Origin: Podarcis liolepis
Lineage: Eukaryota
DNA length: 64,000 nt
Direction: 5' to 3' (one strand)
NCBI GenBank assembly: GCA_965112155.1
Contig: OZ218105.1
Shown here: piece after piece, positions 10,750 through 60,139 of the stretch
Layout: every line of letters starts with the position of its first letter
Position numbering within the stretch: the stretch's first letter is position 1
The notes under the pieces: model-generated
What the model saw: only the letters and a program-made list of their open reading frames with translations
Told to the model about the DNA's origin: nothing
The model's database searches: none
Made by a program: the position numbers and the translations under genes

Positions 10750-11180
10750 CAGAAAAAAGACAAAAACAGAAGAAAAATAAAAAATAAAACCATCCTTATC
10801 AAATTCTCCACTTTCTTTACCTTCTTTCCATGACCTCCTCCTCCTCCTATCTCTTGTCTCTTGATTAATAATTGTCACAGCAAATCCTTTCCATAATTCA
10901 TAATATTCTGTCAATACATTACCTTGCTCTATTTTCATCTTATCTTAAACCTTAAAACTTAAAATTTACATCTTATTTATACCAGCTTCTCATAACCATT
11001 ACCTTTTTACCTAATTCTTTAAACATTCTTACAAGAGCCTAGTAATTTCATTTCAACATTTTTGCAACTTTCATAAAAACATTTCTGACGATAGGAAAAA
11101 AAAAGAGAATAAAAACAATCCAATCTTCTTCCAGCGTCCCCTCCCCCTGGTCCCGGGATTATCAGTCCTTTTTGTCCCTT
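10750..11180 (-). mobile_element. Degenerate L1/Tx1-like 3'-end fragments
   Basis: Replaces paralogous host sequence after 10749; minus-strand peptides YYELWKGF and RDQGRGTLEEDW-like resemble the ORF2 C-terminus at 36375-38090. Confidence 0.4.
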
Positions 11181-11184
11181 ACCT

Positions 11185-12054: not shown

Positions 12055-12223
12055 TATATATGCAATAATGATATGCAAAAGAATTCCAAAACATAATGGG
12101 GGTAATTAAAGTTCTGGGCCTCAGACCAAATCCAGTTCTGAATCCTTGGGTTCAATCCTTCTGCATCAGTCCAACAGCAAGTTAATTCCTCTCTTTTGAA
12201 ACATCAGATTTACTTTCATTAAT

Positions 12224-12403
12224 CTAAATGCTAATAAGTAAAATGGAGATAAGTAAAATGGGGATAAGAATGTCTGCTATACGATATGGTGATAATTCAT
12301 TATCAAAACCATCCTGGGGAGTTAGGTCAGTTTCATCTTCTGCTGCAATATCTTCCAACGAAGCATTCAAAGTGGACCAGGATCCCAGGCCATCATTGCT
12401 CAT
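12224..12403 (-). pseudogene. MRGPR 5' fragment (N-terminus to mid TM1, 59 codons then TAG)
   Basis: ATG at 12403; [59 protein letters not shown]; nearly identical to the start of 16840-17838; the rest is deleted. Confidence 0.88.
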
Positions 12404-14086
12404 CTTGCTGGATCTCTACTTTTGAGATTTTTCTTGTATAGCTCTTACTACCAGGAGAAAATAAACAAATGTGGAGCCAGTTTTAGCTATAAAGCTCAAC
12501 CTATTAAACTGAGACAAACAATAATAAAAGAGACATGCTATAGTGGGAATTCATGACTGATAAACAAACACGTTAGGAATATGGTTCACAGGAATATTTG
12601 TCACAACTTATCAGTTTCAAAGGCTTAGGGGGAAAATGGAGTTTGCCGATGTGTTGTGGGTCTTTCCTCTAAGTAAAAAATCTGCATTCACAACATCAGT
12701 AAGCACATCGTTTTAGAACTCAAATTCTCCTCTTCTGCTCTCTGACTCAGCCTTAAGATCAGAAACTAACCTCTTGTGTCGTGGACTTCGGTTGGTTGGG
12801 TGTTGGAGAAGAGGAGTGTGAGAAGGAGTTGAACAGCTCTTGTGATTCTGAAATGAATTGGGAAGGCATGTGTAATTTTATTGTTATTAAAATGTGATTT
12901 TGAACAAAAGTGGATAAATAAAATTCAAGTTGAGTAGGGATTGTTAAGAAATATGAAAATTAGAAAAAAAAACCACAATAGATTAGCCAGACAGCAAGAT
13001 TTTTACAATGTGGAATGTATTAGACAAACCATTACTCTATCCTGCGTAGTACTTTCTCCTCTGACTGAATGTGGGAACCAAAAATTTATGCCATCTTCAG
13101 CAGCTATCCACCCGGTATCCTTCTAAAAGAACACTCCAGGGAGTTAGCTTGTCCCATCTATCAGCCAAAGGTGCACAGCATTGAAATTCAGCTACAGATC
13201 CCCTCTTACCTTTGCTAATGAATGATACCAAAAGTAGCTATTCGCATTGCTCTCAAAAACTTTGACTCAGCATCCCTCCGGCATGGTGAGTGGGAGCAGC
13301 AAGTCGTGCTGGAATAAGCAGGTAATCGGAAGATTTGCAGAAATTGTTAAGACGCCTCATCTGGCTCTTAGCAAGATGTGTAGGATCCTGCCCATGTCAA
13401 TCCGGTCCTGTGTAATCCATTTGCCAGCATCGTGTGATAAGCTGGTTGCTTTGTGCCTTGGGTCTCAGGATAGCATTTGGCAAACTCAGGAGGAGATTCT
13501 TGCCGTCTAAAGTTCAGTGTCCCAAGCAAGCACTCTTGAGAAGAGAGAGTTTGCAAGTGGTAAGCAGGTCCAACTTCTCTTTGCCCCTATCTGGGTGAAA
13601 TATCTTCCTTGATTAGAGTGTCACCTGATCCATTAACAGAAAGACTAACCAGTGTATTCAGAGAGTAATCAGTTTGCGATTGGTTCTGCTGGGGAAGAAC
13701 TTAGGCTGGGGTGGAGAAATATATCTGAAGAACAAAAAAGAGAGTCCTGCTAGATCAGGTCAGGTGCCCTTGCAGTCAATTGTCCTGGTCTCACAGTGGC
13801 CAAACAGATGCTTCAAGGAAGACCACAACAGCTTCTGAACACAACAGTACTCTCCTCCCCCGTGATGTTCTGCTGGCAGGCCTCAATCGCCTTAATTTTC
13901 CAACCCCCTTGGGAAAACCTTGACATGTCTGGGAGGCCAATCTGCTTTTTTGGGTGGGGTGTGGGCACACTTCTCTCCGATCCCATATGCACCAGTTCTT
14001 TACAGCCTCTATTTATTGATATCAAGCACTCTTCATTCCATCTTGGCGACAAGGAAAAAAATAATTCTCAGTCTGAATAAGGCTGC

Positions 14087-14224
14087 NNNNNNNNNNNNNN
14101 NNNNNNNNNNNNNNNNNNNNNNNNNNNNNNNNNNNNNNNNNNNNNNNNNNNNNNNNNNNNNNNNNNNNNNNNNNNNNNNNNNNNNNNNNNNNNNNNNNNN
14201 NNNNNNNNNNNNNNNNNNNNNNNN
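14087..14224. other. Assembly gap (N run)
   Basis: Ns at the position where paralogs carry (GT)n(GA)n. Confidence 0.99.
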
Positions 14225-14618
14225 CCACCTGGTTCTTAGTTTTTTCCATTCAGTCATTCCATATCCCATTCCACTGAATTTTTTTTCGGGTTGTTCTGGG
14301 GTTTTTATGCCCCTCTCAGCGCCACACAAAGCATGTCTCTTATGCAATGGTGGTATAGTTTTGGATACAGAAGCCCAAACATGGGAAGTATCAGGTTGAT
14401 ATTACTGGACATGAGACTTAGATATGTGATATAGAAGACTCTGTATGAGAATGGTCTACTGGGCACATGTTCATGACCGTTAAATGCCAGGACATTGTTA
14501 TCTGCCACCAGAGCTATCTTGCTTGAACTTATGCAGAAGATAGTTGGGTGTTTCCTGTGAGATGAGACAGTTACAAAAGCATCAAACCCAAAACTTATAT
14601 TATGGGGGGAAATAACTA

Positions 14619-15400
14619 CCGTATTTTTTGCTCCATAGGGCGCGCAGGACTATAGGGTGCACCTAGTTTTTAGGGGGGGGGGGTTTCAAGAAAAGAATAT
14701 ATTTAAAGGGAGTGCTGAGCAGAGCCAGGATGCATCCCAGGCTCTGCTCAGCGCTCCCTTTCACAAGCCGCGTGGAGTGTGTGTGTGGCTTTTGGGGGCT
14801 TTTTCCCGAGTAGGGAGAAGGGCAGCCCTTCAGTGATTGGCTCTCCTCCTCCCTCATCGGGGGAAAGCCCCCAAGAGCATCTCCGGAGGGCAGCGGGATG
14901 AAGGCTCGCTGCTGCCCTGTGGAGGCTTCGCGGGCTACCCCAGAGCTGCTCAGGAGCTTATCGGGGCTGGCGTGGAAAGCCCAGACTTCCCCCACCAGCC
15001 CCAACAACCTCTGGGAGTATTCCCAACCTCCCGCAGAATCCGCACACTCTTTAAAGAGCGCACCGCTCTTGGGGGCTTTTCCCTGAGGAGGGAGAAGGGA
15101 CTAACTGGCGGCGCCAGTCCCTTCTCCCACCTCATAGAAAAGCCCGCAGGAGCCGCGCGCTCTTTAAAGGGTGCGTGGCTCCTGGGGGCTTTCCTACAAG
15201 GTGGGAGAAGGGACTGATGAGGCCAGTCAGTCCCTTCTCCCTCCTGGGAAAAAGCCCGCAAGAGCCACACGGAGCTTGTGTGAGGCTCTTGGGGGCTTTT
15301 CCCGCCTGCCTCCCCCCTGCATTCGCTCCATAAGACGCACACACATTTTCCCTTGCTTTTTAGGAGGGAAAAAGTGTGTCCTATGGAGCGAAAAATACGG
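14619..15400. mobile_element. Tc2/pogo-like MITE, complete
   Basis: TA|CCGTATTTTTTGCTCCATAGG ... CCTATGGAGCGAAAAATACGG|TA; empty site in paralogs (e.g. ~70, ~7757, ~41072). Confidence 0.85.
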
Positions 15401-15594
15401 TATATATGCAATAATGATATGCAAAAGAATTCCAAAACATAATGGGGGTAATTAAAGTTCTGGACCTCAGACCAAATCCAGTTCTCAATCCTTGGGTTCA
15501 ATCCTTCTGCATCAGTCCAACAGCAAGTTAATTCCTCTCTTTTGAAACATCAGATTTACTTTCATTAATCGTGCACGCGCGCACACACACACTT

Positions 15595-15629
<35 letters not shown>

Positions 15630-16839
15630 GAGATACAGAGACTGCAGGAGCTGGGTTTGAAGACAGTAATCTTTCTCTATCACCCATCAGGGCTTTATGC
15701 CATTCTGATGATGAGTGTTACTTGCTCATGCTGATTTTTGGTTAACCTTTTATGTGAGCATCTTGCTTCCTCTCAATTGCATTAGAGCCTTTGAACACTG
15801 TGGTGGGTCACTTAGGTTGTGCCAGTGAAAAGCTAATCAGCTTAAGAGGAGCCCAATCATCTTCCCCCCTGCTCAGAGGTGACTCTTTGCTCTGCAATTC
15901 ACAGTGGACTGCATGGTTTCACCTGACTGCTTTATTCTCATGCCCCATGCCAAGCCTTCTTAATAAGTATTGACCAGAATGATGTGTCAAGGTGAGTATC
16001 TATCCATGGCGATTTCAGTTCTTCACCATGGAAAAGAGTCTAGTGTAGCTTTGGATATAGGCTTGACGGCTAGCATTGAGTGGAAAGTGCATTGAGGCAT
16101 GTTATGGAACCCCCCCCTCCCCAGTATGCTCTGTATTTCCCCCAAAGAACTTTTTGGGAAAGATAGTGAAGCATTGATGTCATGAATCACTTCTGCTAAT
16201 TGTCACATTGCCCTATAAAGTTGTAGATGGCAGAATTTTGTGGATTTCTATATGCACATAGTTACAATGTCTATATCACTACCTTCACATAATAAGCAGC
16301 GATCTTTTTCAGCCAGAACTTTCCGGAACTCAATTCTGGCACCTCTCAGATGGGTGCCATTTAAATTGTAATAGAACAAAGGAGACCTTTATGGTGAGTT
16401 TCTGCACCTCTTTTTCTAGAAAAATAGCACAGAAAATAGGGATTGTACTGGTGGAATTTACTATCATGCACTTTTCAAAAAATCTGCGGAAAATACTTTC
16501 TTCTTTTTTTTTTCAAACATTCGAGCTCTACATGTGAAGATTTCTTTACTTCATTCCCTTTGGCAATGAGTCTGCTTTCTATACCATTTAGCAAGTCATC
16601 CCACTCAACTTACACTGTTTAAGCGGCATTTATTTTTATTTCATTTTCTAAAACATACAAAGCATTAATCCTGCCTAATGGGCAATCCAAGGGGCTTTTA
16701 ACAATACTGCTGAAACAAGGACAAAAATTAACAGGGTACATGAATTCAAAATAATAAAATAGTGAGTACAGAGGAAAAGAAGTACCAAGAAATACACCAA
16801 GAGATAGAACATGACACTTTCTGAGCTACTTTGAAGTCT

Positions 16840-17838
16840 TCACATCCGGGTTTGAACTGAAACTTCTTGTTCCTCTCTGCAGTTTTCCTCCTCTTTGAAA
16901 AGTTTCTGGAGTATGACCTTCATGCTCTCCCTGGAACGAGCCTTCTTGTTTCTCCCAATCAGGAAATAAATCAGTGGGTTAATACTGCTATTCAGGCAGC
17001 TGCATAATAACCCAACAGATATTGCAACAAAGTACATTTTATAGTCTATATCTGGAGGGAAAAAACTGATTAATGAAATGCAAGATAATGGAAAATCTAA
17101 GAAGAGGAAGAAGAGGAGGGCAAGTAGGATGGCTGTTACAGCTTTTCCCTTCTTTCTCTGTTGTGATCTGAAGTAAACTTTTGTAAACAGGACCAGAGTG
17201 GAAACAGTCATGAGTGGGAGGCAAAGTATAGCATTCAGTAGAAAGTGGAATAAAAGTGTATACCGTAGAACAATAAAAATAGCAACAATCAAGTTGATTG
17301 CAATGAACAGGAAAGAAATGATCCATATTGTGGCACACACAAGGGTGGAAAAGTGTGGTGGTCGGTGGCATCGATGCCAAAGTGGGAAGACGACAGAAAC
17401 ACACCTGTCCATGCTAATAGCTGTCAGCAGATATTGACCAGTGTTGTACATGAAGAAAAAAAGAATGGAAACCACTGTGACAATCCAATGCATGTAGGGA
17501 GTTAAGAATGACTCCAGAAGATATATAATGGAAAAAGCAAATAAGCATATGAGAGCCCCAAGGTCAGCCGCAGCCAGATGCAGGATGAAGGTGGTGAAAG
17601 GATTCCTCTTCATGCAAAAGCCAAGAAACCAGATGACAGTTCCATTCCCAATGATTCCAAAAATGCTAATAAGTAAAATGGAGATAAGTAAAATGGGGAT
17701 AAGAATGTCTGCTATACGATATGGTGATAATTCATTTTCAAAACCATCCTGGGGAGTTAGGTCAGTTTCATCTTCTGCTCCAATATCTTCCAACGAAGCA
17801 TTCAAAGTGGACGAGGATCCCAGGCCATCATTGCTCAT
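16840..17838 (-). CDS. MRGPRH-like: Mas-related GPCR, intact, 332 aa
   Basis: 7TM MRGPR motifs; uninterrupted ORF; has Asp in TM6 (FLDFP, where paralogs have LAFP). Confidence 0.9.
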   Translation of the reverse strand: MSNDGLGSSSTLNASLEDIGAEDETDLTPQDGFENELSPYRIADILIPILLISILLISIFGIIGNGTVIWFLGFCMKRNPFTTFILHLAAADLGALICLFAFSIIYLLESFLTPYMHWIVTVVSILFFFMYNTGQYLLTAISMDRCVSVVFPLWHRCHRPPHFSTLVCATIWIISFLFIAINLIVAIFIVLRYTLLFHFLLNAILCLPLMTVSTLVLFTKVYFRSQQRKKGKAVTAILLALLFFLFLDFPLSCISLISFFPPDIDYKMYFVAISVGLLCSCLNSSINPLIYFLIGRNKKARSRESMKVILQKLFKEEENCREEQEVSVQTRM

Positions 17839-26266: not shown

Positions 26267-26437
26267 NNNNNNNNNNNNNNNNNNNNNNNNNNNNNNNNNN
26301 NNNNNNNNNNNNNNNNNNNNNNNNNNNNNNNNNNNNNNNNNNNNNNNNNNNNNNNNNNNNNNNNNNNNNNNNNNNNNNNNNNNNNNNNNNNNNNNNNNNN
26401 NNNNNNNNNNNNNNNNNNNNNNNNNNNNNNNNNNNNN
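26267..26437. other. Assembly gap (N run)
   Basis: Ns at the microsatellite position of the duplicated unit. Confidence 0.99.
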
Positions 26438-30766: not shown

Positions 30767-31762
30767 ATGAGCAATGATGGCCAGGGATCCTGGTCCACTT
30801 TAAATGCTTCATTGGAAGATATTGGAGCAGAAAATGGAACTGACTTCCTAACCCCCCAGGACGGTTTCGATCACGAATTATCACCATATCATATAGCAGA
30901 CATTCTTATCTCCATCTCCATTTTACTTATTAGCATTTTTGGACTTATGGGGAATGGAACTGTCATCTGGTTTCTTGGCTTTTGCATGAAGAGGAATCCT
31001 TTCACCACTTTCATACTACATCTGGCTGTTGCTGACCTTGGGGCTCTCATGAGCTTATCTTCTCATTCGATTATGAGAATTTTGAGTTTATTTTCATCCT
31101 TACCTTTGTATAGTTACTTGTTCATAGTATTCGACTATTTCTTGTTGTTCATGTACAACACTGGTCAATATCTGTTGACAGCCATTAGCATTGACAGGTG
31201 TGTTTCTGTTGTTTTCCCACTTTGGCATCGATGCCACCGACCACCACACTTTTCCACCCTTGTGTGTGCCACAATATGGATCATTTCTTTCCTGCTCTCT
31301 GTAATCAGCATGATTCTTTTTATTTTTAGAGATACAATGAATCCCCTTTTCTATCTGCTTCTAATGAATGCTATACTTTGTCTCCCACTCATGACTGTTT
31401 CCACTCTGGTCCTGTTTATAAAAGTTTACTTCAGATCACAACTGAGGAAGAAGGGAAAAGCTTTAAGAGCCATCCTGCTTGCCCTCCTCTTCTTCCTCTT
31501 GTTAGCTTTTCCATATACTTGCATTTTATTAATCAGATTTTCCCCTCCACTTATAGACTATAAGGTTATATTTTTTGCAATACCAGTTGGGTTGTTATGC
31601 AGCTGCCTGAATTGCAGTATTAACCCACTGATTTATTTCCTGATTGGGAGAAACAAGAGGGCTCGATCCAGGGAGAGCATGAAGGTCATACTCCAGAGAC
31701 TTTTCAAAGAGGAGGAAAACTGCAGAGAGGAACAAGATGTTCCTGTTCAAACCTGGATGTGA
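30767..31762 (+). CDS. MRGPRH-like: Mas-related GPCR, intact, 331 aa
   Basis: 7TM MRGPR motifs; uninterrupted ORF. Confidence 0.92.
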   Translation: MSNDGQGSWSTLNASLEDIGAENGTDFLTPQDGFDHELSPYHIADILISISILLISIFGLMGNGTVIWFLGFCMKRNPFTTFILHLAVADLGALMSLSSHSIMRILSLFSSLPLYSYLFIVFDYFLLFMYNTGQYLLTAISIDRCVSVVFPLWHRCHRPPHFSTLVCATIWIISFLLSVISMILFIFRDTMNPLFYLLLMNAILCLPLMTVSTLVLFIKVYFRSQLRKKGKALRAILLALLFFLLLAFPYTCILLIRFSPPLIDYKVIFFAIPVGLLCSCLNCSINPLIYFLIGRNKRARSRESMKVILQRLFKEEENCREEQDVPVQTWM

Positions 31763-38661: not shown

Positions 38662-39663
38662 ATGAGCAATGATGGCCCGGGATCCTGGTCCCCTTGGAAT
38701 GCTTCATGGGAAGATATTGGAGCAGAAAATGGAACTGACCTCCTAACTCCCCAGGATGGTTCTGATCATGGATTGCCACAATATCGTATAGCAGACATTC
38801 TTATCCCCATTTTACTTATCTCCATTTTACTTATTAGCATTTTTGGAATCATTGGGAATGGAACTGTCATCTGGTTTCTTGGCTTTTGCATGAAGAGGAA
38901 TCCTTTCACCACCTTCATCCTGCATCTGGCTGCTGCTGACCTTGGGGCTCTCATATGCTTATTTACTTTTCCCATTATATATCTTCTGGAGTCATTCTTA
39001 ACTCCCTATATGCATTTGATTGTATTATTGGGTTCCATTCTTTTTTTCTTCATGTACAACACTGGTCAATATCTGTTGACAGCCATTAGCATGGACAGGT
39101 GTGTTTCTGTCGTTTTCCCGCTTTGGCATCGATGCCACCGACCACCACACTTTTCCACCCTTGTGTGTGCCACAATATGGATCACTTCTTTCCTGCTCAT
39201 TGCAATCAACTTGATTGCTGCTATTTTTAACATTCTACCGTATACCATTTTATTCCAGTTTCTAATGAATGCTATACTTTGCCTCCCACTCATGACTGTT
39301 TCCACTCTGGTCCTGTTTAGAAAAGTTTACTTCAGATCACAATAGAGGAAGAAGGGAAAAGCTTTAACAGCCATCCTACTTGCCCTCCTCTTCTTCCTCT
39401 TCTTAGCTTTCCCATTTTCCTGCATTTCATTAATCAGTTTTTTCCCTGTAGTTATAGACTATAAAATGCAATTTGTTGCAATATATGTTGGGTTATTATG
39501 CAGCTGCCTGAATAGCAGTATTAACCCACTGATTTATTTCCTGATTGGGAGAAACAAGAGGGCTCAATCTAGGGAGAGCATGAAGGTCATACTCCAGAGA
39601 CTTTTCAAAGAGGAGGAAAACTGCAGAGAGGAACAAGAAGTTCCAGTTCAAACCCGGATGTGA
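38662..39663 (+). pseudogene. MRGPR with one premature stop (CAG>TAG at 39343-39345, ICL3)
   Basis: Frame continues after the TAG (RKKGKALTA...NPLIY...VQTRM); paralogs have CAG or CTG at this codon. Confidence 0.88.
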
Positions 39664-41334
39664 AGAAATACTTCAAGATAGCTGAGAAAGCCTCATTTTC
39701 TATCTCTTCTTTCTATCTATTTCTTGGTACTTGTTTTCCCCTGTCCTCACTATTTTATTATTTTGAATTCATTTACTCTGTTAATTTTTGTCCTTGTTTT
39801 AGCAGTATCGTTAAAAGCCCCTTGGATTGCCCATTTGGCAGGATTAATGCTTTGTATGTTTTAGAAAATTAAATAAAAAAGAAATGCCACTTCAACAGAC
39901 TTTGAGTTGAGAAGGATGACTTGCTAAATGGTATAGAAAACAGACTCATTGCCAAAGGGAATGAAGTAAAGAAATCTTCACATGTAGAGATTGAATGTTT
40001 GAAGAAAACAGAAGAAAGTATTTTCCCCAGGTTTTTTAAAAAGTGCATGATAGTTAATTCCACCAGTACAATCCCTATTTTCTGTGCTATTTTTCTAGAA
40101 AAAGAATGCAGAAATTCACCATGAAGGCCTCCCTTGTTCTCTTATAACAGCCATGGCACCCATCTGAGGGGTGTGGGACTTGAGCTCTGGTGAATTGTGG
40201 CTGAAAAAAAAGCCATGTTTATATCGATGTAGTGATATAGAAATTATAACTATGTGCATATAGAAATCTACACCTTTATAGGGCAATGTGACAATTAGCA
40301 GAAGTGATTCATGACATCAATGCTTCTCCAACTTTCCAATAATTTTTTGGGGAAAAAACACCAGAGCATACCGGGGGGGAGATGGCTCCATATCATGCCA
40401 CAATGCACTTTCCACTCAATGCTAGCCGTCAAGCCTATATATTCAAACATGCACTAGACTCTTTTGCATGGTGAAGAACTGAAATCACCATGTATAAAGA
40501 CTCACCTTGACACATCATTCTCGTTAACACTTATTAAGAATGATTAGGATGGGGCATGAGAATAAAGCCGTCAGGTGAAACCATGCAGTCCACTCTGCAC
40601 TGCAGATCAAAGAGTCCCCTTTGAGCAGGGGAGAAGATGACTGGGCTCCTCTTATGCTGATTAGCTTTTCACTGGCACAAGCTAAGAGACCCACCACAAT
40701 GTGCAAAGGCTCTAATGCAATTGAGAGGAAGCAAGATGCTCACATAAAAGGCTAACCAAAAATCAGCTTGAGCAAGTAACACTCATCATCAAAATGGCAC
40801 AAAGCACCTGATGGGTGTCAGAGAAAGATTACTGCCTTCCAACCCAGCTCCTACAGTCTGTGCGTGTGTGTGTGTGTGTGTCTGCGCGCGCGCGCGCGTG
40901 ATTAATGAAAGTACCGTAAATCTAATTATTCAAAAGAGAGGAATTAACTTGCTGTTGGACTGAAGCAGAAGGACTGAACCCAAGGATTGAGAATTGGATG
41001 TGGTCTGAGGTCCAGAACTTTAATTACCCCCATAATGTTTTGGAATTCTTTTGCATATCATTATTGTATATATAGTTATTTTCCCCCATAATATAAGTTT
41101 TGGGTTAGATGCTTTTGTAACTTGTCTCCTCTCACAGGAAACACCCAAATATCTTCTGCAGAAGTTCAAGCAAGATAGTTCTGGTGGCAGATAACAATGT
41201 TCTGGCATTTAACGGTCATGAACATGTGCCCAGTAGACCATTGCGTGTTGAGTCCCACAAAGCCACCCTCACCAATAACTCACACTTCACACGTTAATTT
41301 TGTTTAAGGTTTTTGGCATGATTTTGGCCACAAC

Positions 41335-41340
41335 TTTATT
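41335..41340 (-). terminator. Poly(A) signal of the YR retrotransposon
   Basis: AATAAA in TTTTAATAAAGTTGTGGCCAA, 92 nt from the element 3' end. Confidence 0.6.
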
Positions 41341-41352
41341 AAAATACATATA

Positions 41353-41693
41353 CGTGAGTGGTTGCTTAGGCATTGGTTAAGACTATCTGTCCTTGCCCAG
41401 GGACAGGGCTGGCCTTCCGGATTCCAGCGGAAGCCAGCCTGGGAAACAAGTATTGGGTGAGAAGGTGAGGCTGGGTAACAGTCCCACACCTCTCACCCTC
41501 ATGTTCCTGTGGGGCTTGCACGGCCCAGGTCCGACTCCGGGGACAAGGACGAAAGAATGGCAAGCCCCTGGATTCCTTTAACGGAATTCCCTTTCCGCCA
41601 CCATTGGAGGGGTAGGCACTTACCCCTCCCAACCAATTTTAAACCAATGCCTAACCGCCAATGGAGCCTTAGCTCGCCGCCAAACCACTCACG
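41353..41693 (-). ncRNA. Putative structured cis-acting RNA in the 3' UTR of the YR element
   Basis: Long-range inverted repeats 41353-41363/41683-41693 and 41366-41378/41642-41654 enclose several hairpins; motifs shared with 55806-56162. Confidence 0.55.
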
Positions 41694-42263
41694 AACTCAG
41701 CCAAGACCTTAGCTTAGCCACCACAGCACCCAACCACGCCTTATTCCCTAAGGCCGAAAGATGCACCCCATCATCCCTGAATAGAGATTCCTCCCTAGGC
41801 AGAATCTCAGGATGGGAAATCACGTCACCTCCCAACTCGAAAACTTTTTCCGAGACCGCTGAATTGATCCGCTTCCTAGCCCTCTCAGTGGCAGTTGGGC
41901 AACGACTGCCTCTCCAACTGCGCCTTTGCAAAAACTTTGACCAGAAAATTTTTGTTGCCGGCACCATTGCCCGCAGCACTTCAAGATCTCCCAGGATAGC
42001 AGCACGTAACGAAGCACAGTCCATAGAAACCAGGTCGTTCTCACCCAACTGCACCACAATGGCCGTGGGCGGCCCTTCCTCTGCCAGCTGCCTACGAATC
42101 AGTGGCAGAAACTCAGTCCAGGACATCCCCCTTCTGGCCAGCCAAGATACGCGCACGTGAGGAGGAAGGCCGAGACCCGGTCCCAATCTGAGCTGCCTGG
42201 CTCCAACAGCGGCCCAATGTACGATACTGTGCCCCACCATCCATATGCGTACGGCTGCTAAAC
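41689..42263 (-). CDS. SGNH/GDSL hydrolase (esterase) ORF of the YR retrotransposon
   Basis: IWMVGHS (block I), RGMSW (block II), QLGENDL (block III), DGVH (block V); ATG at 42240, with the frame open back to a splice acceptor at 42264. Confidence 0.85.
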
Positions 42264-42296
42264 CTGGTATAGAGAAACAAAATATAAAACATCATG

Positions 42297-43220
42297 TTAG
42301 CGAACATAGCCTCTAAACGCGTTCGACTTCCAACGACCCAAGTTCTTTATCCTGCCCGCAGACAGGCCCCAATGTGCTGCCATCGTGGCAGCCCCGATCC
42401 TGAAAGAATGTGGGGCAAAATCACTAGCAGAAGCACCACAAGCCGCAATGGCCTTCCGCATCACCCTTGCAAACTGTCGCCTAGACAGAGGCGACCCATC
42501 TTCGTGCTGCAATAATGGACCTTCTCCCGGAGCCCGGAGGGACAAGTACCTCCTGACATCTTTGACCGGACACGGACCCACCTCCCTTGCGGCCGGTAAA
42601 CGAATGAGGGCTCCCCTTCCACCCTGATCCGTTTTAGAATTCCTGATGAGGAGTCTTAGCTCATCTGGAGATAGCTGTGCATCCTGAAACAATAACCCCC
42701 TGGAACGACCATTATTGTGCTCCTCCCATACGAGCTCACCAACCCTTAGTGCTCCGAAGAAGGCAATAGAAAAGGCCGCAGAAAAAAGGCGAGCCTCATA
42801 CCTAGACCAGCAAACGCTCCTCAGCTCTTTGCGCATCTTGCACAGCAAATCATATGATATAGGGTGCCTAGTAGCTGGCTGGGAAGGACAAAGCCTACCC
42901 CATCCCTCAAGAGCCTTACGTACGGAAAACTTAGCGCAAGGATCCTTGTCAAAATAAGCTTTGCAGAAAAAGGCAATGGCAGCTGCCTGAATTCTTAGCG
43001 TCTTCGCTGCACGTCCTAACTGAAACAGGTGCGCCAAATATCTTAGCACCTGAGAAGTCAAGGGGGAAGCCCCCCTTTGCTCCCCGGCCGACTGATATGT
43101 AAAGGACAAAAAATCAGCCCATGCTTTGGTGTATGACCTGAGTGTAGAAGGAGAAATAGAAGCCATTACTCCCTGAAACACTAGCTCCTGCCAAGGCTCC
43201 AGAGATGATCCGGGAAACAT
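42297..43220 (-). CDS. Tyrosine recombinase
   Basis: FFGALRVGEL (R), SKTDQ (K), HSFRIGAAT (HxxR), GRWKS...GYVR (W, Y nucleophile). Confidence 0.95.
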   Translation of the reverse strand: MFPGSSLEPWQELVFQGVMASISPSTLRSYTKAWADFLSFTYQSAGEQRGASPLTSQVLRYLAHLFQLGRAAKTLRIQAAAIAFFCKAYFDKDPCAKFSVRKALEGWGRLCPSQPATRHPISYDLLCKMRKELRSVCWSRYEARLFSAAFSIAFFGALRVGELVWEEHNNGRSRGLLFQDAQLSPDELRLLIRNSKTDQGGRGALIRLPAAREVGPCPVKDVRRYLSLRAPGEGPLLQHEDGSPLSRRQFARVMRKAIAACGASASDFAPHSFRIGAATMAAHWGLSAGRIKNLGRWKSNAFRGYVR

Positions 43221-45193
43221 TCCGGACGTTTCCGAGCCTCTGGAACCAGAAGTCTGAACCGCTCCATCTGAAAACGGGACAGAGCATCAGCAATTTCGTT
43301 AGACACCCCCGGAACAAAACGTGCGGAAAAGACTATATTATAGCGTAAACAATGTAAAACAAAAGCCCGTAAGAGGGCCGACACCCTAGGAGAGCGGGAG
43401 GACAGCTTGGCCAACACGTTTACCACCGCCTGGTTATCAGTCCAGAAGCAGACTCGTCGGTCCCTGAACTCTTCGACCCACAAGTGCACTGCCACTGCAA
43501 TGGGAAAGAACTCAAGAAAAGTTAGGTCCCGAGTAATGGCTGTTCCCTGCCAATCAAGAGGCCAGCGCTTGGCACACCACCTACCCATCCAATATAGACC
43601 AAAACCTTGGGATCCTGCAGCATCTGAATGCACCTGAAAATCGTTCTGCAAGTTCAGAGTATCTTGCCATAACGATACCCCATTAAAATCCTCCAAAAAT
43701 TCCAGCCATATGCTGAGATCAGCCCTCACCTCCCTGGAAAGACGAACACGATGATGCGGGGCCTTCAAGCCCACCGTGAGGCGAGCCAATCGAGAGCAAA
43801 AGGGGCGGCCAGGGGCCACCACCCTACAGGCAAAATTCAGGTGACCTAACAGCGACTGGATCTGCAGTAGGGACACCTTCTTTAAGGGAAGCAATTCCTC
43901 TATAACATTTTTCAAAGCCACCAGCTTATCCTTTGGCAAGCTAGAGGTTTGAGACACCGTATCCAAAAGGATGCCCAAATACGTAAGCTGAGTCGAGGGG
44001 CCCTCAGTCTTTTCAGCCGCCAATGGGACCCCTAGCTCCTCAGTAAGGGCAGCTAAAGCACGCAACAGAACCGAGCAATTGTCAGTATTACACTCAGAAG
44101 CCAATAAAAAATCATCCAAATAATGAGTAACCCCTTCCAACCCGGTTTTCAGCTTGAGGGCCCATTCCAAAAAGGTGCTAAAAGATTCAAAAGCAGCGCA
44201 CGCTATAGAGCAGCCCATGGGCATGGCCTTGTCAAAATAGTATTTTCCCTCAAACTGGAAACCGAGCAGCCAGAAATCCTCCGGATGAATCGGGAGCAAG
44301 CGGAATGCCGACTCAATGTCGCATTTTGCCAATAACGCAGCTGGTCCAAACTTCCGGATCATCTTGATCGCGTGATCAAGAGAGGCATACCTAACTGAGC
44401 AAAGTTCTGGAGGAATCACATCATTAACTGAAGTACCCCTAGGGTGAGATAAATTATGAATCAAACGGAATTCACCAGGGGCCTTCTTTGGCACGATGCC
44501 CAGTGGGGAAACATGCAAATTAGTAAATGGAGGGGCACAAAAGGGGCCAGCCATCCGATGCATAGCCACCTCTTTCGTCATCTTCCTTCGGGCAATCTCT
44601 GGCAATTCACGAACTGATTTCTGATTAGACGAATTCCGAGCCACGGGAGGCTTGGCTACCGGAATCCGAAAACCAACTGAAAAACCGTCGCTCAGGTAAC
44701 GAGCGGCCTCCCTATCCGGGTAAAACCTGAGCCACTCTTTTAGGGCCGGCAGACGAATAGGAGTCTGGGCCAGTGAAGTCAGCACCTCATTTTGCTGTTC
44801 CTGAGGTTGAGGGTGTGGGGGGGGCTGCCTTGGGGGGTTGTTGAGAGCCCCCTTTTCCCCCACGAAAGGGCCGCCGCCCACCAAAACAAGAGGAAGCCGG
44901 ATGCAATCCATTGCACTTCTCACAAGTGTGCGCAAATCTACAAGTTGAACGCTGACAGGAAGTCCTGTTAAAATCCCAACACGGCAATCGACGGCCAGGT
45001 CTGAAGGCAGAGACACCCTGTTTCTGCTGCTCCGGTACCTTTTTGTCAATGAGTGGGGCAACATGAGTAGTCCACACATCGAGATCTTTCCGATCCCAGC
45101 GTGCAGACGGAATCTTGGCCGCACGACGCCTAAAGTTCTCATCATATTTGATTGCGGCTTTATCGCCAGCCTTGGTAAAGGCAGAGCGTACAA
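43181..45193 (-). CDS. Reverse transcriptase-RNase H (DIRS type); true start uncertain, overlaps gag
   Basis: FRLIHNLS, KCDIESAF, MPMG, HYLDDFL, YLGI; RNase H SDAA, FLEFFPI, TDNQAVV, NEIADALSR; no methyltransferase tail seen. Confidence 0.95.
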   Translation of the reverse strand: MYALPLPRLAIKPQSNMMRTLGVVRPRFRLHAGIGKISMCGLLMLPHSLTKRYRSSRNRVSLPSDLAVDCRVGILTGLPVSVQLVDLRTLVRSAMDCIRLPLVLVGGGPFVGEKGALNNPPRQPPPHPQPQEQQNEVLTSLAQTPIRLPALKEWLRFYPDREAARYLSDGFSVGFRIPVAKPPVARNSSNQKSVRELPEIARRKMTKEVAMHRMAGPFCAPPFTNLHVSPLGIVPKKAPGEFRLIHNLSHPRGTSVNDVIPPELCSVRYASLDHAIKMIRKFGPAALLAKCDIESAFRLLPIHPEDFWLLGFQFEGKYYFDKAMPMGCSIACAAFESFSTFLEWALKLKTGLEGVTHYLDDFLLASECNTDNCSVLLRALAALTEELGVPLAAEKTEGPSTQLTYLGILLDTVSQTSSLPKDKLVALKNVIEELLPLKKVSLLQIQSLLGHLNFACRVVAPGRPFCSRLARLTVGLKAPHHRVRLSREVRADLSIWLEFLEDFNGVSLWQDTLNLQNDFQVHSDAAGSQGFGLYWMGRWCAKRWPLDWQGTAITRDLTFLEFFPIAVAVHLWVEEFRDRRVCFWTDNQAVVNVLAKLSSRSPRVSALLRAFVLHCLRYNIVFSARFVPGVSNEIADALSRFQMERFRLLVPEARKRPECFPDHLWSLGRS

Positions 45194-46313
45194 TCGACAG
45201 ATAAACTAACAAATGAAGGGACCTACGTGGATAAGCTGCCATGACTATACCGGCGAAGACCTGAAAACAGTCAAGCCAGTGTTCGAAGGTCCTGCCCGCC
45301 GCAGAAACCCCTGAGCGCTTTTTAGTAGAAGCGCTTCCTTTTTCCTGCTCTTCAGAAGGCGGGGCTAACTTGAAAATGTCTACATAGCGTCCATTTAAAA
45401 TCCTGGCCCGCCATTTCGATGACAAGTGTGAGCCTGGGATAATATCCCTGGCCGAATTGGTTGAGACTTTAATGTCGGGAACCAACACACCATCCCTGCA
45501 TTCTTGAACAGCTCCATACTTTGCCCGATGAGCGTTGGACCTGCGCTCCCAAGCCCACCTAGGAAGCCCCGAAGCCGATTCACCAAAACCCCAATAAAGT
45601 TCCAAGTGAGTACCCTCATCGTCGGAGCTAGAGGAAGACGTACCCGAAGTGGAGGAAGTGGAGTCATCCTTCCTGCGCTTTGCACGTTTCCGAGACGCCC
45701 TCTTGTGGCGACGCTTCCCTCCCAAGGACTTCCTGGCGGGGACCGGGAGACTGTCTTCGACAGAGGATTCCGAATCAGGGTGCTGCTGAGACGGAACTGA
45801 AACAGACTGCATAGAGACAACATGTGAGATACCAGAACCGGATGCCACAACCGGTAGAGAGCGAGCAGGTGTGCGCCGGCGAGTGGACGCAGCCAACGGT
45901 GCGCTCCTTCCCGAGGCCCGCCTGGAAAGGCGGCCTGACCGCCGAGGCCAGTTCTGTATTACAGGTAAGCCAGGAGACTGGGATAACTGTGGATTCCTAA
46001 TTAAACCCTGTGGTGACGATCCTTCTCCCTCATCCTCGCTAGATGACGATGAAGCCGGAGGCGGCACCACTGCTGAAGAGGGCGGGCCCCCAGACGTGGA
46101 CGGTTGAGAAGAACGATGTTGCAGGAAAAGGTCCAAATCAGCTGCGAAGCGAGATAGAGCCGCAGGGTCACCTGCCATGCCTGCCACCAACGATTGCACT
46201 CGCCCCACCGGTTGATTGGTGGGGGGAGAGCGGAGCACTTGGGATGGACCTCTGATAGGCCGTTTTGACGTGATGGCAGAGCTGGAGCGCGTAGCAGCTT
46301 TCTTTGGAGCCAT
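44787..46313 (-). CDS. Gag-like ORF1 of the YR retrotransposon
   Basis: Ser/Arg-rich N-terminal half with a basic NLS-like stretch; YDENFRR; C-terminal CWDFN...C...C.FAHTCEKC..LH...C zinc finger typical of DIRS/Ngaro Gag. Confidence 0.88.
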   Translation of the reverse strand: MAPKKAATRSSSAITSKRPIRGPSQVLRSPPTNQPVGRVQSLVAGMAGDPAALSRFAADLDLFLQHRSSQPSTSGGPPSSAVVPPPASSSSSEDEGEGSSPQGLIRNPQLSQSPGLPVIQNWPRRSGRLSRRASGRSAPLAASTRRRTPARSLPVVASGSGISHVVSMQSVSVPSQQHPDSESSVEDSLPVPARKSLGGKRRHKRASRKRAKRRKDDSTSSTSGTSSSSSDDEGTHLELYWGFGESASGLPRWAWERRSNAHRAKYGAVQECRDGVLVPDIKVSTNSARDIIPGSHLSSKWRARILNGRYVDIFKLAPPSEEQEKGSASTKKRSGVSAAGRTFEHWLDCFQVFAGIVMAAYPRRSLHLLVYLSIVRSAFTKAGDKAAIKYDENFRRRAAKIPSARWDRKDLDVWTTHVAPLIDKKVPEQQKQGVSAFRPGRRLPCWDFNRTSCQRSTCRFAHTCEKCNGLHPASSCFGGRRPFRGGKGGSQQPPKAAPPTPSTSGTAK

Positions 46314-46729
46314 ACCTGCTAGCAGGAGATAAAATCAAAACCAGTTAAATTACCGATCGCAACAGCAAAATAAGGCTAGCAACCTCCAGACAATAAGCCC
46401 TGCTGGGCCTTCCACCAGCTGTTACTAGATCACCTCAAATGAATTCTAGGCCGCAGCTCGGAAAAGACTGTCTCTTGGCCAAGGCAATAGCCAGGTGTAT
46501 TCGTCTCTTACAGTATCTATCTATCTATCTATCTATCTATCGGAAAATAAAACAAAGATGCAGTCGTAAGCACTGATGCCAGCCCAAGAGGCCCCAGCAG
46601 GCCCAAACGCAAATAAATTACCACCAAGCAGCAGTAATATTACTTGCCCAGTCACTTATTTAGCGGCAGTGTGATAAATTAGCAGCCAGCAGGGGCAGGG
46701 GTAGGGGGGGTGGGGGGTGAGGCCCAGTC

Positions 46730-47270
46730 CCTCACAAAACAATTGAGGCGCAGTACCTCTCAGAGCCACTAGGGGGAGCCTCCGTCGGCAAGACGATGCC
46801 CCAAAATGGCGGAGCCAACCAGAATGACTCGGCAATAGTAGCTAGGCCGCGAGCGCGCCCAGGGCCGCGGCGCTGACGCGACGGGCCTGTATTTGCCCCC
46901 CCCGCACGCCCACGCGAGGCGGGCGGGCCCGCTGGCTCAAGAATGGGGCCCGCTGAAATCACCCCGGCGGGGCGCTCCCCCGCCGCCGCCGCCGCGCGGC
47001 CGCCGGACACAGCCCCGGAGAACGGGGCGTCGCCGACGCGGCAGCGACCTCGGCGAATTGGGCCTGGATCCCGCCGCCCGCCGCGACCCCAGGTAGGCCC
47101 GAGTGCACAGGAGCCGCAATGAGGGCGGGGGGGGGGGTCTAAGGCGCTCCGCTACGGAGCTATGGATGGGAGAAGGGCGGGCCGCGGCCCTGCGAGGGCA
47201 CGGGCGCTTCCCCCGGCGCACGGGAGGAGGCCTCCCCTGGACTGGGGGGGGCACCCCCGCTCCCACTAAA
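46730..47270. promoter_or_regulatory. CpG-rich 5' region of the YR element
   Basis: Very high GC content and undecayed CpGs compared with the AT-rich host. Confidence 0.5.
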
Positions 47271-47519
47271 CTGCAATTAAATTAACTAAAGAAGCCAAAT
47301 TAAATTAACTAATAAATAAACAAAAGGACAGATCTAGACGAAAGAGGAGGAAGGGAAAAAACGGGAAGGAAATAATAAAGGGAGAGGAACAGAAGGCAAT
47401 AAGGCCCAAAGAAAATCAACGTCCAATAAACAATTCTTTATACTCAGCAACCGGCTCCAGACAATCTGCTCCGTGATCCGATGCAGAGGCCAAGAGGACT
47501 TCCCCACGTGAGTAACCTG

Positions 47520-47527
47520 TATTTATA
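47520..47527 (-). promoter_or_regulatory. Putative internal TATA box (TATAAATA) of the YR element
   Basis: ~160 bp inside the 5' terminus, same strand as the ORFs. Confidence 0.5.
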
Positions 47528-48369
47528 GCCTCTGTCCTTCTCTCTCAATTGGAAACATGCTAAACTCCCCAGCAACCCAATTAACCCTTTAAGGGATTCT
47601 ACTTTGTCCAAACCTGCCTGGTAACAGCAGGGTGGCTTGTATTCTCCCACCCGCAACCCATGCTCTCTTTTGATGGAGAACACGCTTTCCCATACAGAGT
47701 CTTCTATATCACATATCTAAGTCTCATGTGCAGCAATATCAAGCTGATACTTCCCATGTTTGGGCTCCTGTACCCAAAACTATAGCACCATTGCATAAGA
47801 TACATGCTTTGTGTAGCACTGAGAGGGGCATAAAACCCCCAGAACAACCCGAAGAAAATTCATTGGAATGGGATATGGAATGACTAAATGGAAAAAAACT
47901 AAGAACCAGGTGGAAGGGGGCATGATGTATGTTGGTCTCTCTCTTTCACACAAACACACACAGAGAGAGAGAAAGAGAGAGAGAGAGACCATCTCTTGGT
48001 CTGGCTAGATTGTAGCCTTTTTTCCTTGTCCCCAGGATGGAATGAAGAGTATTCCCAAAAAATAGAGGCTTTAAAGAATTGAGGCATGTGGGATTGGGCT
48101 GAAGTATGTTGAAGACCCAGCAAAAAAAGCATATCGGCCTCCCACACATTTCAAAGTTTTCCCAACAGGATTGAAAAATCAAATAGATTAAGGCCTGCCA
48201 GCAGATCATCATGAGGAGGATAGTCCTGTTGTGTTCAGAATGAGAAATGGTGGTCAGTTTTGCATCTACGCTGCAGCAAGAAGAAAAAAGAGGAACTAGT
48301 GGCAGAACGAACAGCACAGTCAGATGCACTTTGCCCATGCTTGAAATCCTAAGTAACACAAAATGTATA

Positions 48370-51435: not shown

Positions 51436-51556
51436 ATATGAGTGTCTCACTTTAATATGGTTGAGCTTTGTAGGCAAAACTGACTCCACATTTGCTTCTT
51501 TTCTCCTGGTAGAAAGAGCCATTGAAGGAGTAGCTCAGAAGCAGAGATCCTGCAAG

Positions 51557-52540
51557 ATGAACAATGATGGCCTGGGATCCTTGTCCCCTTGGAATGCTTC
51601 ATGGGAAGACATTGGAGCAGAAAATGGAACTGACATCCTAACCCCCCAGGACAGTTTTGATCATGAATTATCACTAAATCATCCTATACCAGCAATTATT
51701 CTATATTTCATAATTATAGTTATTAGCATTTTTGGACTTATGGGGAATGGAACTGTCATCTGGTTTCTTGGTTTTTGCATGAAGAGGAATCCTTTTACCA
51801 CTTTCATACTACATCTGGCTGTTGCTGACCTTGGGGCTCTCATGACCTTATCTTGTTGTTCGATTATGAGAATTTTGAGTTTATTTCAATTCTTCACTTT
51901 TTATATTTACTTGTTTGAAGTATTCGAGTATTTGTTGCTGTTCATGTACAACACTGGTCAATATCTGTTGACAGCCATTAGCATGGACAGGTGTGTTTCT
52001 GCTGTCTTCCCACTTTGGCATCGATGCCACCGACCACCACACTTTTCCACCCTTGTGTGTGCCACAATATGGATCCTGCTCACTGTAATCAGCATGATTC
52101 TTTATCTTTTTAGAGATACAATGAGTCTCCTTCTCTATCTGCTTCTAATAAATGCTATACTTTGCCTCCCACTCATGACTGTTTCCACTCTGGTCCTGTT
52201 TATAAAAGTTTACTTCAGATCACAACTGAGGAAGAAGGGAAAAGCTTTAACAGCCATCCTACTTGCCCTCCTCTTCTTCCTCTTCTTAGCTTTCCCATTT
52301 ACTTGCATTTTATTAATCAATTTTTTCATTTTAGACTATAATGTTGTATTTTTTGCAATACCAGTTGGGTTATTATGCAGCTGCCTGAATAACAGTATTA
52401 ACCCACTGATTTATTTCCTGGTTGGGAGAAACAAGAGGGCTCGATCCAGGGAGAGCATGAAGGTCATACTCCAGAGACTTTTCAAAGAGGAGGAAAACTG
52501 CAGAGAGGAACAAGAAGTACCAGTTCAAACCCAGATGTGA
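51557..52540 (+). CDS. MRGPRH-like: Mas-related GPCR, intact, 327 aa (ATG at 51557)
   Basis: AAGATG start is homologous to the paralogs; 7TM motifs; in-frame 3-codon deletion in TM4. Confidence 0.88.
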   Translation: MNNDGLGSLSPWNASWEDIGAENGTDILTPQDSFDHELSLNHPIPAIILYFIIIVISIFGLMGNGTVIWFLGFCMKRNPFTTFILHLAVADLGALMTLSCCSIMRILSLFQFFTFYIYLFEVFEYLLLFMYNTGQYLLTAISMDRCVSAVFPLWHRCHRPPHFSTLVCATIWILLTVISMILYLFRDTMSLLLYLLLINAILCLPLMTVSTLVLFIKVYFRSQLRKKGKALTAILLALLFFLFLAFPFTCILLINFFILDYNVVFFAIPVGLLCSCLNNSINPLIYFLVGRNKRARSRESMKVILQRLFKEEENCREEQEVPVQTQM

Positions 52541-53693: not shown

Positions 53694-53835
53694 NNNNNNN
53701 NNNNNNNNNNNNNNNNNNNNNNNNNNNNNNNNNNNNNNNNNNNNNNNNNNNNNNNNNNNNNNNNNNNNNNNNNNNNNNNNNNNNNNNNNNNNNNNNNNNN
53801 NNNNNNNNNNNNNNNNNNNNNNNNNNNNNNNNNNN
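53694..53835. other. Assembly gap (N run)
   Basis: Ns at a microsatellite-bearing position of the unit. Confidence 0.99.
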
Positions 53836-55449: not shown

Positions 55450-56245
55450 GTGTGGACCCTGGTAGTTTGGGCTGGCTTCATCCTCCCCAGGTTGGATATC
55501 TGGAGGTCTCTGCCTACCTCAGCCAATTGCCCAATCCCGCCTGGGGAGGCGTTACAAGGAGTTCGGCCAGGTAAGGGGAGGGACCACCCTGCCCACACAA
55601 CAGAAGGTGAATCCTACCTGCGAAGTGTCAGTTGATTCCAGAGCTTCTCCCACCCTGCCCTCCCTCCGTTAAGTCTTCTTTTGCAGGTTAACCTCTTCTG
55701 CACAGGTATGCAGGCGCTGCTATGTCTTGGTCACTGTTGAAGGGCCGGAAAGGAATTTTCCAGCATTGGCAGGTTTTGCCTTTCCAGTAGCAAAACATCA
55801 AAACTTTGGCAGTTTCAGGCCTTGGGCGGGATCCTTTAGTCTATCTTCCTAAATGGGGTGTGTGTGTGAAGTGGTGACCCACGCCCCCCTTGCGGCGGTC
55901 AGCCCAGGGTTCACTGTTAAAGGGGTCTTGAGGGGAGGCATTGGCGAAACACCAAGAGGTTGTCATTGCTGTCCCCTCCAACGGCGGCGAAACAGGGGCG
56001 GGCTCTCTGCTTGAACATATGTTCTCCAGAGCCAGCACAATCCCCACACATTCTGGGTAACCCTGATGTCTTCCAGATCCCCGGCTGCGGATTCGGAAGG
56101 ATAAACGCCCAGTGCCTGAGCCAAGGTCTCCCTACACCTGAAATTTAATAAAGTTGTGGCCAATTGCAATCCCATAGCACGTTGTTTTGAGTCATTATTC
56201 CGCTCAGGGGTTGCCTGGGGTTGGGGGGACTCTGCCTGTCCACGC
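55450..56245 (+). mobile_element. Putative non-autonomous relative of the YR retrotransposon (non-coding; 5' end uncertain)
   Basis: Shares TTTAATAAAGTTGTGGCCAA, CCCCTCCAAYGGYGGCG, the paired AGGC/GCCT arms and the CACGC|AA terminus with 41243-41693; candidate TIR GTGTGGAC/GTCCACGC. Confidence 0.6.
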
Positions 56246-58583: not shown

Positions 58584-59176
58584 TTACATATGCGTTCCCA
58601 AGGCATTGTTTCATTATGTTTTTATTTATGTTGAAAGCCATCAACTGTGGCTGGGGAACCCAGTCAGATGGGCTGGATACTAATAATAATAATGGCTTTT
58701 GTTTTCCTGATCTCCAGAGCCATTCAACTCCTTCTCCTGTTCCTCTTCTCTTCTCCACTCCAGTTCTGAAGCACTGAGCCTATCCAACCACCCCACTCCC
58801 AGGACAAAATACGTAAGTTTCAGATGTTAAGACTGACTCCGAGAGCAGAAGAGGGGAAATTTAGTTTAGCTTACTGATGCTGTGCCTGCAGATTTTTCTA
58901 CTGGGTGGAAAAATCTATAACCATACTGCATTTCCCCCTAAACCTTTGAAACTGATAAGTTTTGACAAGAATTCCAATGAACAATATTCCTAAAGTGATT
59001 GTTTGTTTGTTTATCGGTCATGAATTCCCACTACAGCATGTCTCTTTTGTTATTGTATGAATGTCTCACTTTAATATGGTTGAACTTTATAGCAAAAAAA
59101 TGAATCCACATTTGTTTATTTACTCTTGGTAGGAAGAGCCATACAAGAAATAGCTGAAAAGCAGAAATTAAGCAAG

Positions 59177-60139
59177 ATGAGCTATGGTAGCCTGGGAACC
59201 TGGTCCACTTTGAATGGAACCGGCAATGGAACTGGGCTCCCCAACTCCCAACATGGTTCTGGTGATATATTTTCATCGATTTTTTTAACAGAAATTATCA
59301 TCATCTCCGTTTTACTTATTAGCATTTTTGGACTTATGGGGAATGCAACTGTCATCTGGTTTCTTGGCTTTTGCATGAAGAGGAATCATTTCACCACCTT
59401 CATCCTGCATCTGGCTGCGGCTGACCTTGGGACTCTCATATGCTTATTTACTTTGTCCATTATACGTCTTCTGGGGTTATTTTCATTTTCATTCTTAGAT
59501 TATTATTATTTGTTATTACCTTGGGGTTCCATTCTTTTTTTATTCATGTGCAACACTGGTCAATATCTGTTGACAGCCATTAGCATGGACAGGTGTGTTT
59601 CTGTCGTCTTTCCCCTTTGGCATCGATGCCACCGACCACCACACTTTTCCACCCTTGTTTGTGCCACAATATGGATCATTGCTTTCCTGATCTCTGTAAT
59701 CTTCATAATTCTTTATGTTTTTAGACTTCCAATGAGTTCCCTTTTCTATCTGCTTCTAATGAATGCTATACTTTGTCTCCCACTCATGACTGTTTCCACT
59801 CTGGTCCTGTTTATAAAAGTTTACTTTAGATCACAACAGAGGAAGAAGGGGAAAGCTTTAACAGCCATCCTACTTGCCCTCCTCTTCTTCCTCTTCTTAG
59901 CTTTCCCATTAACTTGCATTGTATTATATATTCTCTGCAATGGTGGAAACAATACTAAACTATTTCTTGGCCTCTTATGCAGCTGCCTAAACAGCAGTGT
60001 TAACCCACTGATTTATTTCCTGGTTGGACGAAAGAAAAACAGTCCATCAAGGGAGAGCTTGAAGGTCATATACCAGAGGGTTTTCAAGGAGGAAGATTGC
60101 AGAAAGAAGCGAGATGTTCCGGTCCAAACCCAGATCTGA
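59177..60139 (+). CDS. MRGPRH-like: Mas-related GPCR, intact, 320 aa (ATG at 59177), most divergent paralog
   Basis: AAGATG start; 7TM motifs; distinct N-terminus, ECL3 and C-tail. Confidence 0.9.
   Translation: MSYGSLGTWSTLNGTGNGTGLPNSQHGSGDIFSSIFLTEIIIISVLLISIFGLMGNATVIWFLGFCMKRNHFTTFILHLAAADLGTLICLFTLSIIRLLGLFSFSFLDYYYLLLPWGSILFLFMCNTGQYLLTAISMDRCVSVVFPLWHRCHRPPHFSTLVCATIWIIAFLISVIFIILYVFRLPMSSLFYLLLMNAILCLPLMTVSTLVLFIKVYFRSQQRKKGKALTAILLALLFFLFLAFPLTCIVLYILCNGGNNTKLFLGLLCSCLNSSVNPLIYFLVGRKKNSPSRESLKVIYQRVFKEEDCRKKRDVPVQTQI

Follow-up and report, generated by a model that had tools for sequence, protein, structure and literature searches.

The window analysed here is a stretch of 64,000 nucleotides from Podarcis liolepis (assembly GCA_965112155.1, contig OZ218105.1), and its main subject is a transposable element on the reverse strand which, by its gene content and domains, is a coding-intact tyrosine recombinase (YR) retrotransposon of the Ngaro type, as a preliminary description of this DNA had proposed (Table 1). 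The four open reading frames (ORFs) of the element are all open and follow the order gag-like protein, reverse transcriptase (RT) with RNase H, YR and, as an additional frame after the YR, a protein of the SGNH type. ORF2 overlaps ORF1 in another frame and ends 40 nt past the start of the YR frame. Domain matches were obtained for RT, YR and SGNH, those of ORF3 (Phage_integrase, E=9e-5, and a SAM-like N-terminal domain) both being below Pfam's cut-off, and no Pfam family reached significance for ORF1. The C-terminal 262 aa of ORF2 matched no Pfam family at E<=5 and are read as RNase H by eye, from the NEIADALSR motif; no methyltransferase domain was found downstream of the RT/RNase H.

Table 1. 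Features of the element, of its flanks and of a second element, in positions of the window.
Feature	Position	Strand	Description
Whole Ngaro-type YR retrotransposon copy	41243-47685	-	6,443 bp; 5' end 47685, 3' end 41243; based on six empty paralogous sites, ORFs and domains
5' terminal inverted repeat	47679-47685	-	GCGTGTT on the sense strand; 7 bp
3' terminal inverted repeat	41243-41249	-	AACACGC on the sense strand; 7 bp
Flanking trinucleotide ATT	41240-41242		Read as target-derived, the empty sites having a single ATT
Flanking trinucleotide TTT	47686-47688		Three bases extra relative to the empty sites; probably from the element's junction
Predicted promoter, TATAAATA box	47520-47527	-	159-166 bp from the 5' end, with a CCAAT some 30 bp before it; read from the sequence
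CpG-island-like block in the long 5' untranslated region	46686-47285	-	600 bp; GC 0.67-0.80; CpG observed/expected 0.66-1.12
ORF1, gag-like, 508 aa	44787-46313	-	C-terminal CCCH finger, then CCHC-type zinc knuckle, in gag-like order
ORF2, RT and C-terminal part read as RNase H	43181-45193	-	RVT_1, E=4e-13
ORF3, YR, 307 aa	42297-43220	-	R, H-x-x-R and Y motifs present
ORF4, SGNH/GDSL esterase, 183 aa	41689-42240	-	Lipase_GDSL_2, E=1e-5; GHS, GEND and DGVH blocks intact
3' (B) module with poly(A) signal	41243-41660	-	About 410 bp; homologous to 55836-56245; common to a very high-copy repeat family
AATAAA poly(A) signal	41335-41340	-	92 bp from the 3' terminus; GU-rich stretch after it
Second element, non-coding	55450-56245	+	796 bp; starts GTGTGGAC, ends GTCCACGC; 386-bp 5' part, then B-module homologue of about 410 bp (55836-56245)

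As in the Ngaro elements DrNgaro and DIRS-53_XT and DIRS-54_XT of Xenopus, the gag-like, RT/RNase H, YR and SGNH frames stand in this order, and both a methyltransferase domain and a target-site duplication are absent (PMC9210276); SGNH ORFs are themselves a Ngaro trait in amphibians (PMC9210276). Unlike these elements, the lizard copy does not have the split direct repeats A1-ORFs-B1-A2-B2: A2 is absent and B, about 410 bp long, is present once, whereas the SGNH-bearing Xenopus family DIRS-53_XT has split repeats with an A of 236 bp and a B of 152 bp (PMC9210276). With the DIRS1-like elements (DIRS-1 of Dictyostelium and the DIRS-like elements of Xenopus) it shares the YR retrotransposon type and, by prediction, termini missing from the transcript, but its terminal inverted repeat is only 7 bp long and it has neither long inverted terminal repeats nor an internal complementary region nor a methyltransferase domain. 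Of the PAT-like combination of split direct repeats and a methyltransferase domain, neither part is present. Crypton DNA transposons resemble the element in moving by a tyrosine recombinase, in having short or absent terminal repeats and in the absence of a target-site duplication, but they are devoid of RT, RNase H and gag, all three of which the lizard element has.

The closest homologues of the RT were found in Podarcis muralis (83-90% identity) and then in Zootoca vivipara, those of other squamates (about 55-60%) and of amphibians including Xenopus (48-52%; Xenopus proteins 48-49%) being further off. For the SGNH frame, identities were 80-82% with Podarcis lilfordi and P. muralis and 42% with Lissotriton. 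The observed/expected CpG ratio is mostly 0.5-1.1 along the element, which indicates that the copy is young.

The ends of the element were delimited with element-free paralogous sites, six of which were identified in the window (near 7588, 14450, 19858, 28346, 34219 and 61443). These are intergenic parts of duplicated G protein-coupled receptor (GPCR) gene units, and at all six the sequence that ends at 41242 in the left flank runs straight on into that which starts at 47686 in the right flank, which fixes the element's ends exactly, as the preliminary description had held. The empty sites read ...GACCATT followed directly by CTCATACAG, and the occupied site reads ...GACCATT(GCGTGTT...AACACGC)TTTCCCATACAG. 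On the forward strand of the window GCGTGTT stands at 41243-41249 and AACACGC at 47679-47685. The 7-bp terminal inverted repeat noted earlier is real, and its description can be refined by the trinucleotides beside it, since the insertion adds three bases beyond the element (ATT before 41243 and TTT after 47685, against one ATT at the empty sites). A target-site duplication is absent, and there is a short trinucleotide at each end, one of them read as derived from the target. In the model described for the DIRS order, one trinucleotide is target-derived and the other comes from the circle junction (PMC7192593); the ATT and TTT flanks, together with the single ATT of the empty sites, therefore fit this model. 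In the DIRS-like elements of Xenopus, the trinucleotide at either end is TTT (PMC9210276).

Joining the two ends through TTT gives the virtual 3'/5' junction AACACGC-TTT-GCGTGTT, which is a perfect 7+7 palindrome. The offset inverted block reported before (41257-41269 against 47629-47640) is present, but it is only marginally above chance (p about 0.04, 1000 shuffles). A resemblance of the ends to core plus arm-type recombinase sites is possible, but the subterminal block that would make the arm stands barely above chance.

Inside the element, no copy of either end, direct or inverted, was found by a repeat search with seed 8, by blastn (word 9, E<=0.01) or by 10-mer sharing, both strands being covered, and the earlier observation that such copies are absent stands. 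Smith-Waterman alignment of the virtual junction with the interior on both strands gave scores of 14 and 12, compared with averages of 13.7 and 13.3 after shuffling, the inverted strand thus scoring at chance; a pattern search allowing up to 3 mismatches found no internal copy of the junction, and no direct repeats above chance were detected within 40700-48300. The copy consists of a single 5' module (A, with the promoter) and a single 3' module (B, with the poly(A) signal), and the internal B1-A2 junction is lacking. The open frames at the two termini, through which a protein spanning a B1-A2 junction would have to read, are only 17-35 codons long.

The predicted TATA box and the AATAAA lie at the distances from the ends that were first reported (about 160 bp and 92 bp), and the AATAAA in B is the element's sole poly(A) signal. 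As had been pointed out for a simple messenger RNA, a transcript running from the predicted promoter to this signal would lack both termini; with its start predicted near 47495 and its poly(A) site near 41310-41320, it would fall short by about 190 bp on the 5' side and some 70 bp on the 3' side, and the copy holds no internal template from which they could be restored. Since both transcript ends fall short and this template is lacking, the copy is probably immobile in cis. Among the public runs screened by sampled words, the element was absent from RNA runs. Termini outside the predicted messenger RNA are the layout that split direct repeats (A1-ORFs-B1-A2-B2) serve, which points to a lost A2-B2 and not to a new mechanism; in DIRS-1, the internal copy of the ends has been found experimentally to be essential for retrotransposition (PMC7192593).

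To follow the abundance of the different parts, Logan contigs of three runs (X1, X3 and X4, from two organisms) were placed on 41213-47212 (6,000 letters), with 47213-47685 outside this stretch. About 55-58% of the element's sampled words occurred in two runs and 30-48% in related organisms, and only 29 reads were placed from the raw-read run X20. In run X1 the word depth was 14-54 over the 5' untranslated region (UTR) at 46413-47212, where exact-match contigs have a depth of 35-43, taken as single-copy depth; it rose to about 250-400 over the coding body, whose other contigs differ by 4-5%, to 6,000-17,000 over 43213-43612 in the C-terminal coding region of RNase H, and at the 3' end to 114,000 (41413-41612) and 275,000 (41213-41412). 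The same profile was repeated in X3 and X4. The coding body is roughly 10 times single-copy depth, and the B module about 1000 times deeper than the coding body in the three runs and two organisms, of which only this thousand-fold contrast is used, as summed contig word depth does not equal copy number. The contig joints listed across 41213-47212 are small single-contig skips.

The depth peak in B is a 43-nt block around the poly(A) signal (41298-41340). Within the 3' tail, the loose contig ends all belong to diverged homologues of this tail, and those at 41272 stop about 28 nt further, at the element's terminus, with the same CGTG(C/T)TGAG end. As these loose ends reach the terminus, B, with the terminus included, is common to a very abundant repeat family. 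The module of about 410 bp seems to rank among the high-copy repeats of lacertid genomes and resembles a tail common to the members of a very abundant non-autonomous family, much as SIRE stands to VIPER. In that trypanosome system the termini of a YR retroelement are likewise common to a far more abundant short interspersed element (PMC7192593), although the host group and the sequences are unrelated to those of the lizard element.

Two other identities were considered for B. A short interspersed nuclear element (SINE) of the transfer RNA (tRNA) type is ruled out by the lack of a tRNA-like head (ARAGORN), and no Rfam match near a family's threshold was obtained for the module. An unrelated nested insertion was rejected, because B has the sole poly(A) signal, its end pairs with the 5' terminal repeat and position 41243 is set by the empty sites.

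At the opposite end, nothing else in the public contigs shared the 5' UTR at 46413-47212 at an identity of at least 90%. With this region, which takes in the CpG-island-like block as far as 47212, at single-copy depth, the form of the element that carries this 5' UTR is therefore not seen amplified, and its 5' module may be the result of a swap or of very fast evolution. An exact-match contig of 447 nt from the 5' UTR is also present in the second organism (run X4). The segment 43213-43612, which includes the NEIADALSR motif, has 20-50 times the depth of the rest of the body and is probably the most conserved RNase H coding stretch, common at an identity of at least 90% to hundreds of Ngaro/DIRS copies of other families. 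That it might be a cis element kept by non-autonomous copies was rejected, since the loose ends there come from diverged homologues of this very coding sequence.

A second, non-coding element of 796 bp lies at 55450-56245 on the forward strand. Some 100 bp before its 3' terminus it carries a 20-nt block, TTTAATAAAGTTGTGGCCAA, identical to the block around AATAAA in the main element, and its positions 387-725 align with positions 6032-6373 of the main element's sense strand (nhmmer E=6.6e-8). Its first 386 bp, which contain CCAAT motifs, are unrelated to the main element. It has no internal repeats, and an empty-site search gave no clean result, so its ends lack that confirmation. A search with the conserved 20-nt tail motif gave 0 matches in genome contigs and, in metagenome contigs, two bacterial chance matches at the start of a bacterial gene. 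This element is probably a solo A-B unit of a related family or a non-autonomous Ngaro relative. Isolated A-B units are known for the Ngaro elements of Cafeteria burkhardae, where they have been attributed to recombination between repeats (PMC8547959), and the 796-bp element has the same form.

We favour, with moderate confidence, the reading that the present copy is an A-ORFs-B derivative of a repeat-bearing Ngaro element from which A2-B2 has been lost, both the former presence of A2-B2 and the route of its loss being inferred. A young lacertid Ngaro copy would have entered an intergenic segment of the GPCR cluster by YR recombination at the ATT/TTT trinucleotide, and a collapse of the B1...B2 direct repeat would leave one A and one B. 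The loss could have occurred by homologous deletion between B1 and B2 after insertion, by template switching of the RT between both B repeats, a behaviour known of retroviral RTs at direct repeats, or, prior to integration, through resolution of a two-junction circle by the YR. To our knowledge, every characterised Ngaro element is of the form A1-ORFs-B1-A2-B2. In Xenopus, the split repeats of Ngaro copies, otherwise conserved ones among them, are often missing in part or altogether (PMC9210276), a loss, whole or partial, in which the lizard copy resembles these degenerate copies. Where degenerate copies and solo A-B units have been reported (PMC9210276, PMC8547959), the loss is described in general, and a coding-intact A-ORFs-B form with exact ends, as seen here, is not singled out. 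Though probably not mobile itself, such a copy could act in trans, as a donor of gag, RT, YR and SGNH proteins for relatives that bear the repeats or are non-autonomous.

Several points weigh against this derivation from a repeat-bearing element. It is drawn from this one copy, and the contig placement ended at 47212, so that a B1-A2 or A2-B2 joint would be beyond its reach. The copy is also young and fully open (CpG ratio mostly 0.5-1.1), which would require the loss to have taken place at or soon after insertion. Finally, the collapse of a B1-A2-B2 arrangement by the assembler would look identical.

The last of the three routes can be taken further, as an explanation which overlaps with the favoured reading as a sub-case of it. 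The element's own YR would split a two-junction complementary DNA (cDNA) circle, with the junctions B1-A2 and B2-A1, into an A-ORFs-B circle and an A-B mini-circle, each of which integrates, so that the present copy and the short A-B elements would be direct integration products and not later genomic deletions. Both predicted products occur in one window, the 6,443-bp A-ORFs-B element and the 796-bp element of A-B type; the main insertion is exact, free of a target-site duplication and flanked by trinucleotides, as YR integration predicts, and a young copy has had little time for genomic deletion. Against this, homologous deletion between B1 and B2 is indistinguishable from circle resolution when only this copy is considered, the two elements are of different families in which B alone is homologous, and distantly so, and the boundaries of the 796-bp element do not have the confirmation of an empty site. 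Circle resolution is regarded as rather unlikely.

It is quite improbable that the absence of the repeats was created by the assembly, the true locus being A1-ORFs-B1-A2-B2 and the B-A2-B loop having been skipped by the assembler because B is very high-copy. B is indeed hyper-abundant, B...B loops are easily collapsed in graph-based assembly, and such a collapse would give the clean A-ORFs-B-flank arrangement that is observed; but a long-read assembly, if used, would read through a loop of about 800 bp, no irregularity is seen across 41243, where the sequence is colinear with the six empty sites, and the N runs of the window lie far from the element.

A repeat-less Ngaro lineage, in which A-ORFs-B is the functional master and the ends are rebuilt with no internal copy of the junction, for example through a DNA circle that the YR excises and that is transcribed across AACACGC-TTT-GCGTGTT, or through structure-guided priming, is very unlikely: although no test found an internal copy of either end, the four ORFs are intact in a young copy with exact ends, the virtual junction is a perfect palindrome, and short A-B type elements free of internal repeats exist alongside a very abundant B module, the single-copy depth of the 5' UTR at 46413-47212 gives no sign of amplification, a transcript begun on a circle at the predicted TATA box would still stop at the first poly(A) signal, short of the junction, DIRS-1 cannot do without its internal complementary region (PMC7192593), the subterminal arm block hardly exceeds chance, and characterised Ngaro elements, including the SGNH-bearing ones of Xenopus, use split repeats, copies that have none being treated as degenerate (PMC9210276). 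The proposal in the preliminary description that the ends are regenerated in another way was not supported, the layout being the one that split repeats serve and the 5' UTR depth giving no sign of propagation. The broader form of this idea, that a lacertid Ngaro lineage and its abundant short A-B partners propagate as single-module A...B units that have no internal copy of the junction, with ends remade at the DNA level through YR excision or resolution to circles bearing the palindromic AACACGC-TTT-GCGTGTT junction, is held to be just as doubtful; if true, such units would be part retrotransposon and part Crypton-like DNA element.

The element is surrounded, over the whole window (1-64000), by single-exon GPCR genes of the rhodopsin family (7tm_1), which form a tandem cluster, encode about 331-359 aa each and lie in both orientations, for example those at 1417-2412, 9126-10127, 16840-17838, 30767-31762, 51461-52540 and 59126-60139. 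A 573-aa ORF on the forward strand at 36369-38090 matches the C-terminal part of RVT_1 and belongs to a retroelement fragment, probably of a long interspersed nuclear element (LINE); a truncated GPCR ORF (38662-39345) adjoins it. Runs of N are found at 14087-14224, 26267-26437 and 53694-53835, all distant from the element.

If the favoured, ordinary reading is true, this locus provides a well-delimited, coding-competent Ngaro copy that is devoid of the repeats for rebuilding its ends, which is useful for annotation, and it would imply that repeat-less copies can stay protein donors for non-autonomous relatives. The abundance of B, together with the co-occurrence of A-ORFs-B and A-B forms in one window, raises the question whether the elements' own recombinase resolves Ngaro cDNA circles, and the further question whether a large non-autonomous family owes its spread to Ngaro elements, in the manner of SIRE and VIPER. 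These two observations, the abundance of B and the presence of both forms side by side, may be worth more than the claim from which the analysis started.

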